The notes: generated by a model not told the origin, from the letters alone. A stretch of DNA of 64,000 nucleotides from Epithemia pelagica (GCA_946965045.2 OX337233.1:1302001-1366000), one strand, 5' to 3'. Positions 24,468-49,322 are shown, counted from the stretch's first letter. A program made the numbers and translations.

Positions 24468-24935
24468 AAGGACCCATCCAGTAGTCTACGTATTACCTAC
24501 TCCTATTACCTACTCCCCTATTGTATCCGGCACCTCTGTGGGGCTTACTGCACTCCACTTTTCCTGTAAACATGGAAGAAAGCAAAGGTTAGTTACTGTT
24601 GTCATCACATCCATCGGCGAGGGAAACACTTACTTTCTGTGCCGCTGTGGCTTTCGGCTTGTTGTTGTTGTTGGTGATGACAACGGTATGACAACGCAAT
24701 GGCAACGCTATGGTGGTGGGAACGCTATGGTGGTGGGAACGGATGGAGTGATGATGGTGTTGTGTCTTCGGTGTAATCACTGGTTTTTGTTACCAATTAT
24801 GAGGAATGAAATGTGGATGGTGAGATGTCCACGGTCTTTGGTACTACTGTTTGTGTTATACTGAGAATCAAGCGATTTTCCGGTACAAATTTCACGTAGC
24901 CAGGTACATACGTGATTCCTGTGTAGAAAGCTTGG

Positions 24936-25239
24936 TACTGAGGATCTGTCTGTTTCTGTCGCTCATTTTTTTATGGCAAGATTTGATTGGGTAGTTAGAA
25001 AGTTCGAATTATGCCCAGTCCCACAGCCGCGGGGGATTTGTCATTCCTCATTTAACTCCCTCCACGAAAAATGATCACTATAGACATTAGTGTAATCAAG
25101 ATATACCAAGACTAAAAATTGGCGACGGTTATATCGGTTTCCCGTTAGGAAGTGGAATCCCTCATCCTATGGCAAGTCCTTCCTTTCCCCTTCCCTTTCC
25201 CCCTTCGCCTGCCTGGGCCCCCCCCAAAGTCGGGGGGAG
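24936..25239. repeat. ~300-bp direct repeat R1
   Basis: Matches 48267-48563. The right ~200 bp are nearly identical and the left ~100 bp are more diverged. It ends in a C-run/aaagtc/G-run hairpin. Confidence 0.92.
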
Positions 25240-25667
25240 GGGTGCAGTTTCCTCAGGCAGCGATCTGATTGGTGCCTTTTCCCCCCTGTCACTATCCTCC
25301 AACTGTCAACCAACCGTCGGAACAACACTAATAATTAGTCTAAAAAAATCCAATGGCGATCCAATTAGCTATAAAAAACATCTAAGTAACACTATTCAAT
25401 ATTTCAAAGTCGGTGGTCCCGGTCGGATGGAATTCGGAACATGCCGATTCCCCACCGAGTTCACCAGAAAATGCCAACCACAAAAATTCCCTCCTCAGCT
25501 CTCTAAAAAATCACACAACACACAACTACGCTCATATTTGGAAAAACAAAATAACAACCAAGAGGTATGGAAAAAGGGGAGTTTAATATGGGCTTTACTG
25601 GCCAGGGCATCTCTCCAGAGACGACCCAACGGACTACGAGCGGCAAACCGTCGACTCTGGATCCCTT

Positions 25668-39108: not shown

Positions 39109-40047
39109 GGTTAATGGGCAACGGTGACTGTTCTTCGGTGGGGATTATTCGAGACCGCTGTTGTTCACGGCTTCTTTCGATGAGAAAGGGGTGAAGACTT
39201 CTGAAAGGAAGCTTCCCAAAGAAGATGATCGGTTCTTCTAAACAATGCGGTAGAAAGCAATTGAGAGTTAGACGCCGTTCCCTTTCTCGTCATGGTCAAT
39301 TGGGTCACTTACCTTTGAAATGAGCGATGGGGTTGGCGATGTCAGTGATGTTCTCAATCACTTCGTGCTTGACATGGGATGAATGAATGATGCCACGAAA
39401 GGTCTCTGGTGGCAAATTATGAGGGATCGTTGTTGGGTGGTGCAAAAACCCACGCTTTGTGTTCTACTATTTTGTCTACAGTCCATTCGTGACAATTTCC
39501 TGGTAGAAATTTCTCGTAGCCAGATACATACGGAATTCCTACGTAGAAAGTTTGGGCACTTCTCCTTTTGACGCTTCTCTTTCTTGACATCGACGTGACC
39601 TTGACTTTGATCCGACAATGAGTCCATGAACGCGAGGGACAAGAGGAGTACAGTACATATGTTTGCTATGTACTGTTAGTTAGGTAAGGGGAACTCCATC
39701 CTTTTGGAGTGTGACTCAGGCGCATCAAGGTGCACCTAGTCACTGAATCGACGTGTTCCAACTTACTGTCAAAGCTGGACCACTCACACCTCCCGCAGTA
39801 GACTTCCAGTCACGAAGCCGGTAGTCCTCGGACAATGTCCGAGTTGGCACGCGGGGCGAACCTCCGCAAAAGCCATTCGTTCAGCCGACACTTGCCACAG
39901 TGACGGCATCCCGAAACTCCATAACTCCATGCCTCTCTGTCCACCGACAGTAGGCTTGCAAACGACAGAGTGCAAGCACTCTTCCCCCCCCCCCCCCCCC
40001 CCCCTGTCTCGTCCGAACAATTTATTTCTTCTTCAAACTTTTGGGTT

Positions 40048-41589
40048 TCACAATGCGGTTGAATATTGCAACAAGGTTTCCAAGGCTGCAACGACGTCAG
40101 TGTACAAGTCGATCATATCTGCTTGAGCGAATCGTCCCCGTGCTTGTTCCTGAGAGCGCCATCGATTGTTCAAGACAATTACATCTTTGGGTACCCGCTT
40201 GTTACGAGCTTGGGTTGTCGAGCCTCTCCGCAACGATCGTCTGAAGCTGTATGTTCCGAGGGAGTCAAGATCGTTTCCCAAAAGATCCTCCCGCTCCTTT
40301 TGACATTCGACCAAAAGATCATGCAACCACACATCGAGTTGCTGAATAGTGGAGGATCGTTCACTGTTTGGTTTGGGTCGGAACAAAGGTCCCTGAGTCA
40401 CTTGTCTGCGATCATAAGCCCGCAACAATCGCACCAACCACTTGCGATTATGTACCCCCGAGTTCGTCCTTTCTGCCAAGGGGATTTTGTGTTTTTGCCG
40501 CGCGATCATTCCTTTGAATCTTCCTTCAAGGGCAATGAGGACATGAGGTCGAGTCGGATGCATGTGTCCTTGTTTAGTCAATTCACGAGTTTCAAAAAGC
40601 CGGGCATGGCCCAACTCCTCTCCTCTTAAAGCACTGGAGAATCCGATCATCAGGGCGGCACCAGCATTGGCCAATTCGAATACCAACTTCTGATCCTGGT
40701 TCTGTTCTGCGTCCTGATAACGCTGCTCAAGTATTTCTCCGAGAACCAACAACACATCAACAGACATCGCCGCGTCTTGAATTTTTACATCTCCCATTCT
40801 TTCGTGGGACCCGTCCATGAAGCGCTTAAACCAAAGCGTGTTGGATACGCTATCTGTTATCCGCGTTGACTTCCTTCCGTCACTCAGCACCGCTCCCTTC
40901 GAACCCGACGGAGTTGAATGTACAAAATTCGAAAAAGCAGATCTTATTCCCCTCATTGTGTCCCATTGGATGGTTTTTGAGTTCTTGCCTCTGTCTAACG
41001 ACCGTTGTAAAGACACCATCGCTGGGATCATACCAAGTGTATCATCAAGGGGATAAGGTCCTCTTCGATGTCTTGGAGCAGGGGAACCAATTCGTAGCTC
41101 GGCCAGTATACTCATGGCCTTAGCCATTTCACGTGCATTGCCCTGCACTGTGCTGGTACGCCGCGCCCAGAACGCATCCAGATTAGCCCGAATCATGCAT
41201 TTCAAGGACCATGCATCTTGCTCATTTTCAACAACGGGATCTCTCTTGTAGATATTCCGAAAGTGGCATAGCTCACATTGGAACGGCGTCATGAGATGGT
41301 CGCCCGCCCTTGCCGTTGTAAACCATGATTTTAAATCTCCTTTTTCTGCTTCGGTACTTTCCCAGCCTGGTTCCTCGGGGATGTAGTTTCCATGTTCGTC
41401 TTGCTCCATTTGAAGAGGCTGGAGGTCTCTAGGGAACGGATCTACCGTCCCTGGCACCACGTAGCATTGAGGATGATACGCCCCCCGGCATGGTTTCCAG
41501 TGCCCGCGAGCGTACCCAAAATTGGCGCAAATAATCCCTCGCGTGTGCGATAGACTTCCGGTGCATCTGACGCAACACATCTCCTTCAT
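40048..41589 (-). CDS. Tyrosine recombinase of the DIRS-like element
   Basis: Catalytic set: R (ALRGEE), K (GRFKG), RSLRRG in the HxxR position, W (NRW) and Y (DLYT). Cys/His-rich N-terminus. Overlaps the pol 3' end by 161 nt in another frame. Confidence 0.9.
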   Translation of the reverse strand: MKEMCCVRCTGSLSHTRGIICANFGYARGHWKPCRGAYHPQCYVVPGTVDPFPRDLQPLQMEQDEHGNYIPEEPGWESTEAEKGDLKSWFTTARAGDHLMTPFQCELCHFRNIYKRDPVVENEQDAWSLKCMIRANLDAFWARRTSTVQGNAREMAKAMSILAELRIGSPAPRHRRGPYPLDDTLGMIPAMVSLQRSLDRGKNSKTIQWDTMRGIRSAFSNFVHSTPSGSKGAVLSDGRKSTRITDSVSNTLWFKRFMDGSHERMGDVKIQDAAMSVDVLLVLGEILEQRYQDAEQNQDQKLVFELANAGAALMIGFSSALRGEELGHARLFETRELTKQGHMHPTRPHVLIALEGRFKGMIARQKHKIPLAERTNSGVHNRKWLVRLLRAYDRRQVTQGPLFRPKPNSERSSTIQQLDVWLHDLLVECQKEREDLLGNDLDSLGTYSFRRSLRRGSTTQARNKRVPKDVIVLNNRWRSQEQARGRFAQADMIDLYTDVVAALETLLQYSTAL

Positions 41590-44500
41590 GCTTGAGAATG
41601 TCCGAGAATTTAATTCGCCAATGATTTCTGTTTAGCAAAGGGAAGGCGAAAGCGATAGTTAGAGGTTCGTGTTCGATATCTTTAGGCCAGAATTCCTCAC
41701 TGAAAGGGAGCACACAAAACATATCCACCGCCTTGCTCAACATTCTTCTCCATCGTCCACTCAACAAGGATGGTGCAAGAAGCACATGCGTGTTCCAAGG
41801 GCGTACATGCCAAGCCTCCGCCATCAGAAAGACAGCGACGTCGGCCAAACATGGCGGTGGGATCCACACAAAAACTCCATCTTGTTCCTGAGGCACTGCG
41901 AACCAGTCGGCCACATCCAAGATTCTCATCGGATCAATATCGTCCACAACTTGACGCAGAAACTTGGTCAAGAGTCGGGGTTGTCTTTCGGCTGCCGTTT
42001 TGTGAAGAGGAACGAACTCCAACATGTCAGTTCCTCGCATGACCCCATTTGTGAGATCGGAACGTGACAATCCATCGGTTCCTTGGGCGATCATTCTCTT
42101 TCCAGACACCCAAACGACGTGAACAAACGCTTCGCCGATCATAAGGATTTTATGGAGTCTGAACATTAGACGCAACACTTCAGGCGATTTGGCGGTGCCA
42201 CGATAGAATGCAGATTCCGCATGCATGTTATCGGTGAATATGAAGACTTCCGCCAACGAGTTCAATCGTCCCTCTTTCGCCATTTGTTCTATTTTCATTA
42301 CAATATTCGCCAGTTCTCGAAAGTTGGAGGACGATCCCTGCATCTTGTCGGATTCCCAGGATCCAAAATCTACCTCCACCTTTTCATCTCCTGGCGTCCA
42401 ACCAGACATCCCAAACCCGGCGCCGGAAGCATCTCCGAAGAAATACCGTACTTTTGCGCCCTGTTTATCTGGTCTTAAAATTCGCTGTGGGGGTTCAGCT
42501 GACTCGGTAAGTTGCTCTAAGGCTTCGATATCGAATTCCATGCGAGGGACCATTCTCACTCTTTCTGGTGCTTTGTCAGTTGCTTCGATGTTGTCTTCTA
42601 GAGTTTCAGAACCGACCTTCCATCCGTCCTCATCTCGATCAGGCCGCCAACTGTTCATGCTGGCGTACACTCCATTGAGGTAGATTCGGATAACTAAATA
42701 GGCCCTGCCCACATGATTAAGAAACCCCGCAACTTGTTCAAGCGTCTTTCGACTTATCGATCCCCTTGGTTTCGCTTGCGTCCTTTCATCCACTTCCTTG
42801 CGCAAACGAGCTATTTCCTTTTTAGTCTTGTCCCATTTCTCTTGAGACACGGCCATGAACGGCCGTCTAGGTGAAGTTCCACACACTACTCCAGCCCATG
42901 CACCAGGGCTTTGAGTTTGTTCGCGACGCTTGCGCGCTGCGTCTTGTACTCCGTGGTACGATGCAGTTTTCGCTATCTTGGAACTAACCTGCCAAGCATC
43001 CTCAGCTGTCGGTCCCGTTCCTCTTAGATCATCAACATAGTCATGCGCATCAGCTGCTAATTCACCCGTGGATCGGTACTTGGCTATCCACGGTATCCCA
43101 GGCTGATAAGTGCGTGTACCAGGTAGGTTGGTTATCACACGACTCCATCGAAACACGTTTTCAGGATCGTCCGCCTTTCCCAGCATAACGCGTTTCAGTC
43201 GCCGCGTTTGCTGGACAGTGTTGAAGGGGGACGGACTTTGTCCCATCGGACATCTGGCCCATCCTTCAACAAACAATTCTCCCGTCTCGGTTTTCCCATA
43301 TATGGGGGTAAGATCCATGCCACTGAATGATTACAAATCCGGGTGGATCCAAAAATTCAGAAACATCTCCCCATAATCGTTGTCGACGCACCAATACGCA
43401 TCATCCAATGTTCTGGTCAGAACGTCCGCGTCTGGCAGAGGGAACCAAGGAGCATGAAGGCACGAATTCAGTCCGCTCTTGGTTCCGTCGTATACCATTC
43501 GGATGTCTGTCTCACCCTTTGGCACGGCGAAGTAGTTCATTGTGGCTTTCCATTCGCCGGGCCCAACATATTGCTTACTTCTTACATCCTCTATCTTCTC
43601 TTTGATCTTGTTGATGGTTTCTTCGTCGCCTAAACCTTGCTGACGCTCGATCACAGGTCGAGGAATTCCTGTCCAGAGTGGGGGCACTCCAATGGCCAAA
43701 TCTCGAATATATTCTTCCGGCCATCGCCAGAAGAAGACTCCCGAACCCATTGGCCATCCCCAGAACGTCGCTTTCATCGCTTGTTGACAGGCTTGTACTC
43801 CGCGGTTATACACAAGTCGCCACCAGCGAGGTTCATTAACTTTTATTACTGATTCATACTTTAACCACCAATCAAACCATGATCGGCGAACGTTTCGCTT
43901 CCAGCGAATCAGCATTACGGTACGTAATCTTTCGAATGCTCGATGATGCTTGGATTCTAATCTCTCACAACCCAAAAGGAACCTGACTCGATCGTCCCAC
44001 AGTTCGACAGGAACCGCGGCCTTGTCGTGCTTGACCGCTTTCTCCGAAGCTGTATCTGCTGACGAGTCCTTGTTCCGCTTGTAATACTTCATGCGTTCGA
44101 ATGCGGCGTTGCCGTGTTGAACACCAACTTTGGTGGATAACTCGGTAACTGTTGTTGTCGTTTTGCTTCGTTTCGCTTCAACGGTCGAGTTGGTGTTGCC
44201 TGATCTCACATCTTGGATGGGTTCCGATTTTCTCTTCCTGGTTGTGCTCGTCCATTCAGCTAAGCATGTCCCGAGAGCCGCGGCCGCCTTGATTGGCGTG
44301 GTCAATTCTCGGATCATAACTTCCTTTGTGGGTTCATTCCAACCTTTTGAAAGAGTTGCCGGCACGTCCAAACAAGCTACGGCTTCACCTACCGTTAAGG
44401 ACCTTCGAGTGAATGACTTTGGACCATATACTGTCGGCAAAGTCCAGAGCTTCTTACGTTTCTTTCGCACGGCAGCCCAACTGACATGCTTTTGGCTTTG

Positions 44501-45208
44501 AGCCTTTTCTTCTTCTTGCTCATTCCGACTGCGTTTCCCTGTCTTGGTTTTATCTAACAAATCTTGGAAAGAACTTTCTGCTCCTCGCAGAAGATCATCG
44601 ATCCAAAATTCATATGGGGACGAACCGCTTGAATCGATTCGCGTCCAAGCATGCGCCCTACCTTGCCAATCAGTAACACCCCCCAGAGTTCGATGATCCA
44701 ATACTCGACTTGACACCTTCCAACCCTGGGGGGGTTTGCCTCGAGGCAAACGATACGAAAGCACCACTTGCAAGTCGTCGTTCCAGAACGAAGTGTCCGA
44801 TCGCGGCGGGCGAAATGGTCCTTCGAATACCACCACGTGACATCTTGGATACACCGACCAGTCGATGCTGTTGTCTGGCTCGGGTGATCTTGCATCTTCT
44901 TTTTGTTTCATCCAATATATTTCGGTTTGAGAGTCGACCATGTTCTCCCAGTGACTTTGAGTTTTCGGTATCAGGAGCCAACTAAGGGAACAGTTCGACA
45001 AATTGCTCGTGAGTGCCACCCATGCTGGTAAACCCTCTGAGACTACACCCATCTTCAATTCGCCTTCTTTGAGTGTTACAAATCTTCGGAACCAAGAAGA
45101 GTACGATTCAGTTACGGGCGTTGCTATTTCAGATTTTTCTACGGACACTGATTTCGTCTCTTGGTCGATGGCTTCATGTTGGCTGGGTTTTTGCGATGCG
45201 ACAATCAA
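41429..45208 (-). pseudogene. DIRS pol: C5-MTase-like N-domain, RT, DIRS-type RNase H, Dam-like C-domain; one premature TAA (43331-43333)
   Basis: RT: VPKGETDIRMVYD, DYGEMFLNF, PMGQSPSP, YVDD. RNase H: GDASG, SSNFREL, FTDN, GTDGLSR. Dam-like: DWF..VWIPPP..HVLLAP..W. ORFs 43331..45208 and 41429..43318 are in frame; first ATG at 45052. Confidence 0.9.
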
Positions 45209-47977
45209 TCATTCTTCCTTGGTGTTGTTATTGTTCTTGGCTTTCTTAGAGGGTAGACGTGCTTGGATGTTCTTCACTTGGCTTTCCACAGCGTCGACTT
45301 TTCTTTTGGCCTGCTGAGCGTCTGACAATGCTTTCTTCACATCATCCACAATGGGATTGACATCGTCGTGGAAACTCACGACATCCAACAGGAAATGCGT
45401 CAACATGGGGCCAACCTTCGGATGGTTCTTGAATTGATGCTCGACAAATTCTTTCTGAAGACGATGAGCCTGCAAGGTGGCCCACAACAAGTCCGGAGCC
45501 CGTTCCCGCGACGTGGCTTGGTTGATGGTGATTTCGCTACACGCCCGTCTTGGCAGACTTATCACTTCGAAAACGATGCGGGTGATGTTCTGGACAAGGT
45601 CCCAGCGTCTTGTTTCGGAGAGATTAGTGTCCGAGCCATAATCTTCGACTTGATCCTTCATGTATATGAAGAGCGTGTCTAAGAAACTCTTGGCATCAGA
45701 AAGTAAGTAACGAGCGATCACCTTGGCGTCCCGGGACATGGAGGACGTCTCAATCTCAGACATAAGAGCTGGGTACTTGTCGGAGATCATCTTTCGAATT
45801 GCATTGGCTGTACCTGAATCTCGCGATCCTGACCCCTTGAATTTCTCGTACGTTTCAACTTTACTCAACTTCCTAGGGCTTGCTCTGGCTTGATCGGGAG
45901 TTCCAGCCAATGCCGTGGGGGCAACCAGCTGGAAAGAGTATACTGCTTTTTGATCACTGGCGCGTTCCATGTTTGACCGCTGGCCGCGATAATGTACATC
46001 CACGTTTTCGGAGAAACTTTGCGAACCCGTGGTGCACATCTCCATAAGCGCCATGGCGTCTACGAATTTCAAAGCCTCCGTCGTGACGCTGTTGGAGGAC
46101 ACGAACGCCGCTACGTGCGATAACGAGGTGAACTTGAACCCCTCGACTTCGACAGTTTGGCTCTCCGTTCGGGCCTCCAAGTCTTGGATTCGGACTCGAT
46201 TGTTCTGGAACTCCTCCTCCAATTTACTAACCAACTTGCGGACTTCCACTACTTCGTCTTGCGTGAGATTGAACATGGAGGTCTGGCCTCCCGTGCTTCC
46301 TGCGGCTTGGACCGCCGCTGCAGTTGTATTTCGAATATGATGCTCAAAGTCGGTGAGCCCTCCTTTGAGAAAGAACTTCTCTGCGACCTTGAGGGTTGGA
46401 GAAGTTTTGGACAACTCGGCCCATATGGCCTTGTTGACCTGTTCGGTGATTAAAGCAACAAATTCCTTGCGAGACGAGTGCATGGCCTCATTCTTCAAAG
46501 AGTGCATGCGAGACTGCAGCGCGTCGATGGATGCGTACATCCTTTTGAAACTTTCACCGTGGAGCGCCTGGCTTTCGTGAATGGCTTGCAACAGCGCAGG
46601 ACTGATCTTTTTCTCTTCCTGGCCAGAGTCATCGGGTGGTGCACCCAACAATCCACTGAGTACGTTGACCTTGTCAACAAGAACGTTAATCAACTGGTTC
46701 TGTTCTCCTTGACGGATCCGCATAGCGGCCAATTCTGCGGCAGTGGCACGATGGATGTGTGCGGTAGCAACCGTATTCTGGGTCACTTTCTGCTTGAAGG
46801 TCGTATCGTCCAAGTCTTGACCCAAATCTTCCAATTCACTTTCCTCGATGGGCGACGGTACCTCCACTGCTTCCAACTCGAGCCTCTTGGCTGGTGTAAA
46901 GGCCGTGAAGGTGGCGTCTTGTTGGATTTCCTCGAGGGTCTTGTGCTTCAATGGAGTAGCAGGACCTGGATTCATCAAGGTCGTGTCCTGACCTTGAGTA
47001 TCTCCACTCAACATGGCGAACATGGAGGACCAGAGCCAAACTGGTTTAAGAGCCCGCGTCATTTCTTGGAGTTTCGACTTGGGCAACTTGGTAGCGTCCA
47101 AAAAGGGGTCCTGAAAAGCTAGCTGCGTAGCGGAACTCGCTGACCCAGTTTTCGGCGTGGGTACCCGAATAAACAAACACTGTTGGAGACCCTGATCCCG
47201 GAGACCACCAGTAAGGGATACAGCCTTGCGATGCGACTTGGTACTGCACCGGCCAAAGGGCTGAATGCAAAACTTTCCAGCTACGCCAACAACGGCTCCA
47301 CAAACAGACTCGTTCGACACATCCAACACAACAAGAGACACAGAATTTTGTAAATCGTTAGTAACACTAGTAGTTGGCTCACCATTAGTGGTAGAGGACT
47401 TCGCATCTCCTTGAAACTTCACGCGGCTGCCCGCAGACGGAGCATCATAATCCACGAACTGAGACGTGTCTCGGGCGCCCGTTTCATGTGTATCCAAACT
47501 GGCAGGCTTGAGAACACGTGGATCAGTCTTAACCCAGTTGCGACGAGACGCAGCGTTAACACTTGCGACGTCCGCCGCAGTAACTGCGGACTGCGAGCGA
47601 GACTCGGCGGTCAACGTGGCCGTCATGAGATCGGTCTCAGTAAGTCCGTCCAAAGAGAAAGATTCGCGAATCGCCGTGGCATCAGCGTTCGTTTCCGCGA
47701 GGAGCTGGTCCCCGAACGACCGAACCGATGGCACCGAAACAAACTCCCCCCCCGTATCACCGCCAGGAAGCGCAGCAAAGCTGCGAGCAGTTACACCAGG
47801 ATCCCGCGAGGCCGAAACACCCACCCCCAAGCCGAAATCCGAGAACGCCGTAGCTAGGTCAGGAGGACCAGCAGGCGGAGCGGGAGGCGGACCAGGCACC
47901 GGAGAGTCACGCGAACGAGACGAGACGCGGGGATCGCGATAAAGCGACGCACAAGCGGAAAAACCAGAAGACGACAT
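45209..47977 (-). CDS. gag-like ORF1 of the DIRS-like element
   Basis: Long ORF in the gag position with probable ATG at 47977; Cys/His motif CGAVVGVAGKFCIQPFGRCSTKSH; coiled-coil segments. Confidence 0.8.
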   Translation of the reverse strand: MSSSGFSACASLYRDPRVSSRSRDSPVPGPPPAPPAGPPDLATAFSDFGLGVGVSASRDPGVTARSFAALPGGDTGGEFVSVPSVRSFGDQLLAETNADATAIRESFSLDGLTETDLMTATLTAESRSQSAVTAADVASVNAASRRNWVKTDPRVLKPASLDTHETGARDTSQFVDYDAPSAGSRVKFQGDAKSSTTNGEPTTSVTNDLQNSVSLVVLDVSNESVCGAVVGVAGKFCIQPFGRCSTKSHRKAVSLTGGLRDQGLQQCLFIRVPTPKTGSASSATQLAFQDPFLDATKLPKSKLQEMTRALKPVWLWSSMFAMLSGDTQGQDTTLMNPGPATPLKHKTLEEIQQDATFTAFTPAKRLELEAVEVPSPIEESELEDLGQDLDDTTFKQKVTQNTVATAHIHRATAAELAAMRIRQGEQNQLINVLVDKVNVLSGLLGAPPDDSGQEEKKISPALLQAIHESQALHGESFKRMYASIDALQSRMHSLKNEAMHSSRKEFVALITEQVNKAIWAELSKTSPTLKVAEKFFLKGGLTDFEHHIRNTTAAAVQAAGSTGGQTSMFNLTQDEVVEVRKLVSKLEEEFQNNRVRIQDLEARTESQTVEVEGFKFTSLSHVAAFVSSNSVTTEALKFVDAMALMEMCTTGSQSFSENVDVHYRGQRSNMERASDQKAVYSFQLVAPTALAGTPDQARASPRKLSKVETYEKFKGSGSRDSGTANAIRKMISDKYPALMSEIETSSMSRDAKVIARYLLSDAKSFLDTLFIYMKDQVEDYGSDTNLSETRRWDLVQNITRIVFEVISLPRRACSEITINQATSRERAPDLLWATLQAHRLQKEFVEHQFKNHPKVGPMLTHFLLDVVSFHDDVNPIVDDVKKALSDAQQAKRKVDAVESQVKNIQARLPSKKAKNNNNTKEE

Positions 47978-48266
47978 GGGGGCGATGGCAGGGTGTGACA
48001 GCAAAAACAAAAACAGATGATCGTCAGCCAAGAGATACAATACCTGCAACGTAAAGCACCTTCAATCAAACAATCAACCTGAGAGACAGTGACTCTATCG
48101 ATCTCACTCCCAACCACAACTCTGGATCTTTCGCATAGAGATACTTCAAGATGACCAGAATCGCATTGGGCGTGATCTTCGTCTTTTCGTCAAGTGTCAG
48201 TCGATGCGTACGTCATTTCATCTTCTTCATATCGATCGCCATATTAGCAGAGGCACATGTAGTACT

Positions 48267-48563
48267 GGGATCTGTCTGTTTCTGTCGCTGGTTTTTTATG
48301 GTGAGATTTGATTGGACAGGAAGAGAGTTCGAATTAGGCCCTGTCCCCCAACCGCGGGGGATTCGTCATTCCTCATTTAACTCCCTCCACGAAAAATGAT
48401 CACTATAGACATTAGTGTAATCAAGATATACCAAGACTAAAAATTGGCGACGGTTATATCGGTTTCCCGTTAGGAAGTGGAATCCCTCATCCTATGGCAA
48501 GTCCTTCCTTTCCCCTTCCCTTTCCCCCTTCGCCTGCCTGGCCCCCCCCAAAGTCGGGGGGAG
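48267..48563. repeat. ~300-bp direct repeat R2
   Basis: Matches 24936-25239 in the same orientation. Confidence 0.92.
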
Positions 48564-49322
48564 CTCTGGAGATTCCTACAATAGAGAGTTAGTCTGTGGT
48601 CTCAGTCTCAAGAAGCAGACAATTGGTCGTCCGTTTTCTCTTCAGAGAACAGATTGACTATTGGTTATTGGTTGCTGCTCCATGTCCTTGTTGCATATCT
48701 TGGAAACCAAGGGAATTTGGACTAGATTGGAGAGAAACTCACACACTCTTGAGAAAGAGGGTAAGGAACAGCGTCATTCACCCCAGAGCATATTGTAGAC
48801 TAGCCCGTAGGCCGAATCTCATGTCTCATGGCACATGGGACATGGGACATGGGACCAAGCCCAAACAACGTTGTAGTTTGTAGTCGTGAAGCATCTAACA
48901 TACAAGTCCATTCACTTTTTTTCTGTATCTGATGCAAATGCAAATGAAGAGCGTCGACGTTCGACGTGTACTTAGAGTTCATGTATCCTCTTCGCAACTA
49001 CAACAACAGCTCGCGCACTCGTGCATGTTGTCGCAGGTGAGAAGGATATGGGCAATCGTCTGTGAAAAAGACAAGTACCCAGTCGCGCACTGGTATCATA
49101 CGCTGTCAAAAGGAGTATCGCTACTGTTGAGATACAAAATATACTAACGTCTGAAATTCATAAACATCACTCGCTGGGATTTATTTGGGGGCCCCTTTCT
49201 GGCGAAATCTGCACCCAACATCTTCAATATAATAATTGTCTTGTCGACTTTGTTTCATTTTTTTGTTCTTCACGCGGAACGAACATCATCAATACACCAA
49301 CAGCAACAGCAACACCAACAAG

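Follow-up and report, generated by a model that had tools for sequence, protein, structure and literature searches.

The DNA analyzed here is a 64,000-nt stretch from the diatom Epithemia pelagica (GCA_946965045.2 OX337233.1:1302001-1366000). We refer to the whole stretch as the window, and all coordinates count from its start. On balance, the minus strand between 39555 and 48268 appears to be a slightly decayed copy of a diatom retrotransposon of the DIRS order, with a putative tyrosine recombinase. Read along this strand, the copy consists of a terminal repeat (A1), a gag-like open reading frame (ORF), an in-frame TGA, pol, an overlapping recombinase ORF and a second repeat (B1). Pol spans 45208-41432. 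Its N-terminal domain, about 305 residues between Gag and the reverse transcriptase (RT) and following a short pol linker, is the main subject of this study. The best reading of this domain is a DNA cytosine-5 methyltransferase (C5-MTase) that was captured by the transposable element (TE) and retained as a pseudoenzyme. Our moderate confidence applies to the explanation as a whole, which combines the element, the C5-MTase homologue, the pseudoenzyme, a readthrough junction and a binding role. Within it, we take the fold, the lost motifs, the conservation and the layout of the element as shown, and inactivity, readthrough and binding as inferred.

The N-terminal domain of pol

The features of the domain are as follows:

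44213-45127, minus strand: predicted C5-MTase-fold pseudoenzyme domain, pol residues 28-332 (AlphaFold2 model and structure matches)
45020-45058, minus strand: motif I position, beta-1 and loop (LKMGVVSEGLPAW), FxGxG absent (model strand 27-32)
44783-44839, minus strand: motif IV position, beta-4 and loop, without the catalytic Pro-Cys (model strand 101-104)
44657-44704, minus strand: motif VIII position, H-x3-G-G-V-T in place of G-x-P-Q-x-R-x-R (model strands 139-147 and 158-166)
44429-44440, minus strand: small (target-recognition) lobe, conserved LP(S/T)V that follows motif VIII and precedes motif IX
44360-44407, minus strand: motif IX (RRSLTVGEAVACLDVP), placed by hhalign
44261-44302, minus strand: motif X position (TTPIKAAAALGTCL), GN(A/S)V lost and only the Pro kept (same hhalign block)

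We found the domain at no fewer than 58 places in this 60.5-Mb genome, with 24-100% identity to a 266-residue query, and most of these copies were in open frames of 1255-1290 residues. It was present in all 69 pol relatives of at least 1150 residues. The ratio of nonsynonymous to synonymous substitution rates (dN/dS) of the domain between copies was 0.06-0.25, and about 20 positions were near-invariant among sequences sharing only ~20% identity. Relative to the nearest intact copy, the identity of the window copy was 91% in the RT-RNase H part and 74% in the domain, and it fell to 41-47% in the linkers on either side of the domain. The domain was basic in all 28 copies surveyed, with an isoelectric point (pI) of 8.2-9.7 (about 9). 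It is real and is maintained by purifying selection in every full-length family member. We also considered a host DNA methyltransferase (DNMT) fused to pol by misassembly or nested insertion. This was rejected because the domain is in frame in 69 of the 69 full-length relatives.

A profile built from 28 copies of the domain retrieved 444 cluster representatives at E ≤ 1e-3 from 1.84 billion proteins, 164 of them at E ≤ 1e-10. A word-index search with the domain found two proteins only, and the same kind of search with the RT part found 527, whose named sources were the diatoms Epithemia clementina and Attheya. Epithemia and Attheya were the only named sources of relatives. Metagenomic contigs of 8-10 kb showed the same order of gag, pol and third ORF. 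One relative (P0134) is a transcript from MMETSP, a collection from cultured protists, and two others (L060 and L061) are environmental contigs of 8.8-9.8 kb, the size of the element. The occurrence of relatives as an MMETSP transcript and as element-length environmental contigs suggests that family members are transcribed in nature.

The domain was modeled with AlphaFold2 from an alignment of 16 copies. The model had a predicted local distance difference test score (pLDDT) of 83.6 and a predicted template modeling score of 0.80, and the five models spanned pLDDT 79.7-83.6. In a Foldseek search against the PDB, all 45 matches at E ≤ 1e-3 were C5-MTases, and their alignments were full length. 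The best was S. pombe Dnmt2 (E 4e-7), followed by M.HaeIII, M.HhaI, DNMT5, MET1 and DNMT3. Alignment with M.HhaI by VIA-align gave Z 16.8 and a root-mean-square deviation of 4.0 over 250-252 of the 327 residues of M.HhaI, with model residues 16-305 on M.HhaI 3-327. Among viral predicted structures (BFVD), the top matches were cytosine methyltransferases of giant viruses and phages (E 6e-7). In a search of ESM-Atlas features, ranks 2-3 went to PF00145 clusters, of which one was diatom (score 0.87); we take this as a lead only.

A scan that did not depend on Foldseek (VIA-wide, 48,161 PDB representatives) placed C5-MTases at all of ranks 1-19 (Z 16.0-9.8 over 221-258 residues). From rank 20 onward came generic class-I methyltransferases and other Rossmann proteins, with Z ≤ 8.0 and covering only model residues ~24-170. 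Because C5-MTases head the scan and the others cover only the Rossmann half, the match is specific to the two-lobed C5-MTase architecture. A generic Rossmann fold was rejected on the same evidence, as non-C5 methyltransferases reached Z ≤ 8 over half of the model only. The predicted structure contains the Rossmann catalytic lobe and the target-recognition lobe, and at motifs IX-X the chain comes back to the former. Bacterial, DNMT1 and Dnmt2 types scored Z 15-16 and DNMT3A/B 12.9-13.4, which speaks modestly against a Dnmt3 origin. Judging from the model, we regard the domain as a probable homologue of C5-MTases with the whole two-lobed architecture kept.

The motifs were compared with those of canonical enzymes by hhalign, using a family profile of 62 sequences and a canonical DNMT profile of 95 sequences that was seeded from the host's own intronless DNMT. 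Family positions 244-295 aligned with canonical positions 284-334 (P = 3.9e-4, probability 35%). This alignment places RRSLTVGEAVACLDVP on R.LTvRE.A.LQSFP of motif IX and P281 on the Pro of GNAVP of motif X. With only the four host DNMTs as target, hhalign failed to align. As nothing N-terminal of this block aligned by sequence, motifs I, IV, VI and VIII were placed by the order of the model strands (beta-1 27-32, beta-4 101-104, beta-5 124-127, beta-6 139-147 and beta-7 158-166).

Column counts were made in 274 family sequences. At motif I, G30 (118 of 120 sequences) and W39 (120 of 125) were conserved, and G35, the second Gly of FxGxG, occurred in 56 of 124. The loop reads S-x-(G/S/..)-x-P-x-W and is not the FxGxG loop that binds S-adenosylmethionine (AdoMet). 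At motif IV, the column equivalent to the catalytic Cys held Cys in 21 of 210 sequences, and Pro-Cys was found in four sequences only; the nucleophile is thus missing from the family at large. P111 (179/205) and W118 (205/211) of the same loop were well conserved. The strand column of motif VI (ENV) was occupied by W in 107 and by S in 48 of 222 sequences, not by the expected Glu. Motif VIII had H148 (236/240), G152 (238/241), G153 (235/240) and T155 (217/241), and no conserved Arg pair of the QxRxR kind. In the small lobe, P234 (211/248) and V236 (208/252) of LP(S/T)V were conserved. Motif IX was retained, with R245 in 243 of 248 sequences, E251 in 243 of 245, and D257 and P259 each in 234 of 243. 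At motif X, P281 (222/224) and K283 (219/223) were kept, and GN(A/S)V was found in none of the 274 sequences.

The family therefore has near-invariant residues of its own, namely G30, W39, W53, P111, W118, H148, G152-G153-V-T155, P234/V236, R245, E251, D257, P259, P281 and K283. Its signatures are H-x3-GGVT, LP(S/T)V, R..L..E.....D.P and P.K. The host's own DNMTs retain FAGAGG, PPCQGFS, ENV, PQSRSR, TVRE..LQSFP and GNAVP. Contig 7 has three canonical C5-MTase paralogues without introns inside a stretch of 50 kb (G000:C7:3046649-3050717 and C7:3095133-3096062; L032, L034/L038, L033). They are 59-65% identical and have all motifs; two of them are adjacent on the same strand, with frames of 805 and 970 residues.

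A preliminary description of this DNA had proposed a degenerate C5-MTase-like domain ahead of the RT and had quoted five strings as its motifs. All five are in the minus-strand translation of 44255-45052, in the order given. The proposal was borne out by the structural match over both lobes and by the profile match at motifs IX-X, a likeness that greatly exceeds what chance would give. Of the two roles that the description had suggested, nucleic-acid binder and anti-silencing decoy, the basic pI and the pattern of conservation lean to the first. The description had named a lack of similarity to Rossmann-fold methyltransferases as the outcome that would speak against it; we checked this, and the match found was strong and specific to C5-MTases. 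Its opinion that the domain is probably catalytically dead agrees with the absence of the catalytic and cofactor motifs across the 274 sequences. The bounds need correction, since the domain is wider (44213-45127) and starts upstream of the Met that had been assumed, which is not conserved elsewhere. The description had also looked to copies that might keep the Pro-Cys motif. The Cys-bearing sequences counted above, including the four with Pro-Cys, all lack ENV, QxRxR and FxGxG, and a rescue of catalysis in that subgroup was therefore rejected.

Anatomy of the element and the gag-pol junction

The remaining features of the window copy are as follows:

48007-48268, minus strand: 5′ terminal repeat A1 (bounds approximate; counterpart of the 262-bp A repeat of the contig 8 copy)
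45212-47977, minus strand: gag-like ORF, from the first ATG (ORF list and translation)
45209-45211, minus strand: in-frame TGA between gag and pol, likely readthrough site (read directly from the sequence)
42056-44023, minus strand: RT and RNase H part of pol (motif positions)
43331-43333, minus strand: premature in-frame TAA breaking pol (intact relatives have a sense codon there)
43028-43039, minus strand: YVDD motif of the RT (motif position)
42422-42439 and 42212-42235, minus strand: RNase H motifs, D/E/D type (motif positions)
42056-42073, minus strand: GLSRSD motif (motif position)
41432-42055, minus strand: conserved C-terminal pol domain, W-x-P-P-P-(C/A) (alignment)
40048-41589, minus strand: putative tyrosine-recombinase ORF, 513 residues, in another frame and overlapping the end of pol by ~160 nt
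39555-40047, minus strand: 3′ untranslated part, probable B1 repeat (in blastn of the window against L031, homology ends at 39555)

At the 5′ end, homology of the window copy with other copies stops at ~48262-48268, and at the 3′ end ~490 nt follow the third ORF. The gag-like product is rich in coiled coil and had no family match in a Pfam search. The gag position is likewise occupied in the metagenomic relatives L060 and L061. The first half of pol is a 625-residue open frame (43331-45208), and the second half (41429-43318) keeps the frame of the first. An intact relative elsewhere in the genome (L031:4179-7946:-) has a single pol of 1255 residues. In a Pfam scan of every ORF, neither an integrase nor a protease was found anywhere in the element.

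Among 28 informative copies, which came from all lineages, 26 had gag and pol in the same frame with one TGA between them. The sites compared were 45209-45211 of the window and its equivalents in L002-L030, L060 and L061, and in both L060 and L061 gag and pol also share one frame. In the alignment of copies, no Met upstream of the N-terminal domain was conserved. The codon directly 3′ of the gag TGA varied among copies. Because of the shared frame, the single TGA in 26 of the 28 copies and the lack of a conserved Met, a Gag-Pol fusion protein is probably made through UGA readthrough, which has the look of an obligatory event.

The repeat architecture was read from another copy, on contig 8 (G000:C8, 1728-1737.6 kb; L080:1566-2725, L081:1809-2070), because no terminal repeats of the complete arrangement were detectable in the window copy, which has A1 and a probable B1 and no A2-B2. 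The contig 8 copy has split direct repeats in the order A1-coding-B1-A2-B2, with A of 262 bp and B of 438 bp. Such PAT/Ngaro-type repeats are known from DIRS-type elements, SymbioDIRS among them (PMC5890265); the other arrangement of the order is inverted repeats plus an internal complementary region. Its A and B repeats are 99.6-99.8% identical, and it is younger than the window copy. A 98%-identical sister of this copy on contig 7 ends after B1, as does the window copy.

A ~305-bp repeat at 48262-48577 adjoins the 5′ end of the element. Eleven or more further copies of it (92-94% identical) occur across the genome, and one copy also lies in the window at ~24935-25253 (G000:C6:1326935-1327253). 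It may be a solo long terminal repeat (LTR) or a short non-autonomous element.

For the RT-RNase H part, the nearest ESM-Atlas clusters carry RVT_1 and RT_RNaseH (score 0.94-0.96). The third ORF has an ALRGEE / GRFK / RS.RRG / NNRWR / YTD pattern conserved across four diverged elements, and this succession of R, K, RRG, W and Y fits a tyrosine recombinase. Between 40048 and 48049 of the window, and in the relatives (L031, L060, L061 and P0026-P0412), curated profiles recognize no part of the element. No significant Pfam, PHROG or PDB-sequence match was obtained for Gag, RT, RNase H, the C-terminal domain or the third ORF; the precomputed Pfam annotation was blank for all of the 120 listed pol relatives; and a full-length pol profile found no match among PDB sequences (HMM/phmmer).

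The C-terminal domain of pol has the invariants W..PPP(C/A)ADVA, H.RP, RW(R/K)..L.K and EPL..AF. Amino-methyltransferases are expected to show (D/N)PP(Y/F/W) where this domain has PPP(C/A). Its AlphaFold2 model was mediocre (pLDDT 66.6), with an alpha/beta fold. Foldseek listed RlmJ, CAPAM and M1.HpyAVI (N6-adenine or amino-methyltransferases) at weak E values of 6e-3 to 0.3. In the VIA-wide scan no match exceeded Z 5.5, the neighbors being CheY-like and other alpha/beta folds, and E. coli Dam (2ore) scored Z 4.8. With these weak structural values and no Pfam or PDB sequence match, the Dam-like identity given to this domain in the preliminary description was not confirmed. Judging from the model, the domain could be the remnant of another methyltransferase that has degenerated, or be of a different nature. 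The description had also placed this domain and the C5-like domain in one ORF. That is true of intact copies such as L031, and it does not hold for the window copy because of the in-frame TAA at 43331-43333.

Function of the domain and rival explanations

Canonical C5 methyl transfer needs a Cys nucleophile, the Glu of ENV and the AdoMet loop. Since the N-terminal domain has none of these, it should not be capable of canonical methyl transfer and is very probably inactive as a catalyst. With the fold conserved and the catalytic and cofactor residues gone, the captured epigenetic enzyme was seemingly kept for a non-enzymatic job. The cofactor-binding motifs are not where its near-invariant residues lie; these occupy the loops of motifs IV and VIII, the recognition lobe and motif IX. 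As in solved C5-MTases, these positions would presumably line the nucleic-acid cleft and not a dimer interface. From this conservation pattern and the basic pI, we favor non-catalytic nucleic-acid binding as the role of the domain, tentatively and with slightly less than an even chance.

The following course of events might have led to the present element. A C5-MTase would have been captured and placed between Gag and RT. The AdoMet loop, the Pro-Cys, the Glu of ENV, the Arg residues of QxRxR and GN(A/S)V would then have been lost, with the fold retained under selection. The domain would now be made as the junction module of a readthrough Gag-Pol, and its retained cleft and recognition lobe might bind the RNA or complementary DNA (cDNA) of the element, or target DNA.

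Several observations weigh against this explanation. PF00145 had no match in the 66 members scanned (16 genomic copies at E ≤ 10 and 50 relatives at E ≤ 0.01). For motifs I-VIII there was no sequence-level mapping, and global or greedy hhalign runs were meaningless or gave no extra alignment. The motif placement in the catalytic lobe is that of one predicted structure, made from 16 sequences, and of strand order, without residue-level superposition. The subgroup with Cys at the motif IV column, including the four Pro-Cys sequences, runs counter to a uniform inactivity. The basic pI is weak as evidence for nucleic-acid binding. As to the junction, the readthrough reading is drawn from frame conservation only, and no conserved RNA structure was found near the gag TGA (135-nt folds in 12 copies had z ~0, and one had -2.6). 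Finally, neither the RT-RNase H part (Pfam and PDB-sequence profiles) nor the third ORF and its profile (Pfam, PHROG and PDB) had a match.

It could be argued that the fold itself is an artefact, with AlphaFold2 forcing a familiar fold on a shallow alignment and the likeness of motifs being due to chance. The model was indeed fed by only 16 sequences, Pfam and a profile of the domain searched against PDB sequences found nothing, and the hhalign probability was only 35%. However, all five models had pLDDT 79.7-83.6, and the unbiased scan had a sharp gap between C5-MTases (19 chains, Z ≥ 9.8) and the rest of the 48,161 chains (Z ≤ 8.0). Moreover, the independent profile match coincided precisely with motifs IX-X, in their correct order, and the language-model feature search independently pointed to PF00145 clusters. 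An artefact is therefore extremely improbable. A true but idle fold, which has no ligand of its own and separates Gag from RT or acts there as a folding scaffold, would agree with the loss of all known functional motifs and with the faster evolution of the domain than of the RT (identity to the nearest copy 74% in the domain and 91% in the RT). Such a structural relic is hard to reconcile with the low dN/dS, with ~20 near-invariant positions at ~20% identity, with linkers that drift freely on both sides and with the absence of any full-length family member without the domain, and we think it quite unlikely.

The remaining rivals give the domain a function other than binding. It might be an enzyme of a non-canonical kind, a methyltransferase or another nucleic-acid modifier, with an active site of H148, T155, K283 and D257 and perhaps acting on element RNA or cDNA. 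H-x3-GGVT, P.K and D.P are 95-99% conserved, which is above what is usual for a structural role; Cys occurs at the motif IV column in a subgroup, with Pro-Cys in four sequences; and the TE-borne DNMTs of Symbiodinium and Klebsormidium are active (PMC5890265). But FxGxG, the motif IV Cys, the Glu of ENV, the motif VIII Arg and the motif X Asn are gone family-wide, and the 10% of sequences with the motif IV Cys lack the other motifs too, which makes activity of this sort very unlikely. By analogy with DNMT3L, the domain might instead be a regulator or decoy that pairs with or titrates host DNMTs, and that shields insertions from 5-methylcytosine (5mC) silencing or recruits methylation. DNMT3L is a precedent for a dead methyltransferase paralogue partnering live ones, and the domain similarly has the C5-MTase fold without the cofactor and catalytic residues. 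There are several canonical C5-MTases in the host, and loss of DNMT5a de-represses young TEs in Phaeodactylum (PMC9998398). Yet the domain is not a free protein but a segment of a polyprotein, and DNMT3-type structures matched it worse than the bacterial, DNMT1 and Dnmt2 types did. Its best-conserved positions are also in the recognition lobe and the loops of motifs IV and VIII, where they presumably face the cleft. A decoy is thus unlikely in our judgment.

The binding role might extend to a broader picture. A whole clade of elements, in diatoms and possibly other marine protists, could depend on a dead captured C5-MTase whose base-flipping cleft reads DNA or RNA and steers integration or evades 5mC silencing. 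The ligands might be methylated or hemimethylated target sites, the repeat junction of the element, or cDNA. Such a capture would have happened separately from those of Dnmt3 in dinoflagellates and charophytes, and this would be the first TE-borne dead DNMT. Taken together, this picture is speculative and somewhat doubtful.

Comparison with known systems and significance

The closest parallel is SymbioDIRS-Dnmt3, a group of dinoflagellate DIRS-like elements whose Pol includes a DNMT (de Mendoza et al. 2018, PMC5890265). Their DNMT is detectable by Pfam, methylates CG de novo in yeast and groups with Dnmt3 in phylogeny (PMC5890265). The diatom element resembles them in its DIRS order, in a separate tyrosine-recombinase ORF (putative in the diatom), in A-coding-B-A-B repeats, in an RT too divergent for Pfam and in a C5-MTase-fold domain inside Pol. 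It differs in that its domain escapes PF00145, has none of the catalytic and cofactor motifs, and fits DNMT3 structures less (Z 12.9-13.4) than other types (15-16). The marks of captured active DNMTs such as SymbioDIRS-Dnmt3 and KnitGypsy-Dnmt3, which are catalytic residues, a Pfam match and Dnmt3 affinity, were thus not found in the diatom domain.

With M.HhaI, M.HaeIII, Dcm, DNMT1 and Dnmt2, the domain shares the whole predicted fold, including the recognition lobe, and the sequence signal at motifs IX-X. The identity is only 8-13%, however, and the domain lacks FxGxG, PC, ENV, QxRxR and GN(A/S)V. Unlike the bacterial and phage C5-MTases and DNMT1/Dnmt2, it is fused between Gag and RT. DNMT3L is a catalytically dead DNMT3 paralogue, a free host protein without a recognition lobe and a partner of DNMT3A/B. 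The two are alike in a C5-MTase fold that has lost its catalytic motifs and is still under selection, whereas the diatom domain belongs to a TE polyprotein and has its recognition lobe complete.

EpiLTRs are also retrotransposons bearing methyltransferase modules, as are the DAM-carrying DIRS and LTR elements. EpiLTRs have DAM and DNMT in one pol, with the DAM pocket preserved, and in Cymbomonas the DNMT is at the 3′ end of pol and is sister to DNMT4 (Fernandez-Moreno et al. 2026, doi 10.64898/2026.05.21.726589). In the diatom element, for which the preliminary description had proposed such a pairing, the DNMT-like domain is instead N-terminal and degenerate, and the C-terminal domain has PPP(C/A) and weak fold matches. 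The preprint on DAM-carrying elements and EpiLTRs makes no mention of diatoms (doi 10.64898/2026.05.21.726589), and a survey of diatom DNMTs did not describe a TE-borne DNMT-like domain (PMC9998398). DIRS is a listed TE class in Fragilariopsis. No published description of the N-terminal domain was found in the openly searchable literature, a scope that leaves out subscription papers and Repbase.

That retrotransposons steal epigenetic enzymes is a known theme, with active DNMTs in Symbiodinium and Klebsormidium and DAM/DNMT in EpiLTRs. The new outcome here is a methyltransferase fold that has been selected in every member of a large family of diatom elements after the loss of all residues related to its chemistry. 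As no ORF of the element, including RT and recombinase, gave a significant Pfam match, surveys based on PF00145 undercount such captures, and Pfam-based surveys of TEs or DNMTs would miss this family. A further feature of the family that lends itself to testing is the in-frame UGA conserved at the gag-pol boundary. The domain is a natural pseudoenzyme for asking what the C5-MTase scaffold does without catalysis. It also provides a concrete candidate on the TE side for the biology of TEs and methylation in diatoms, where loss of DNMT5 de-represses TEs.

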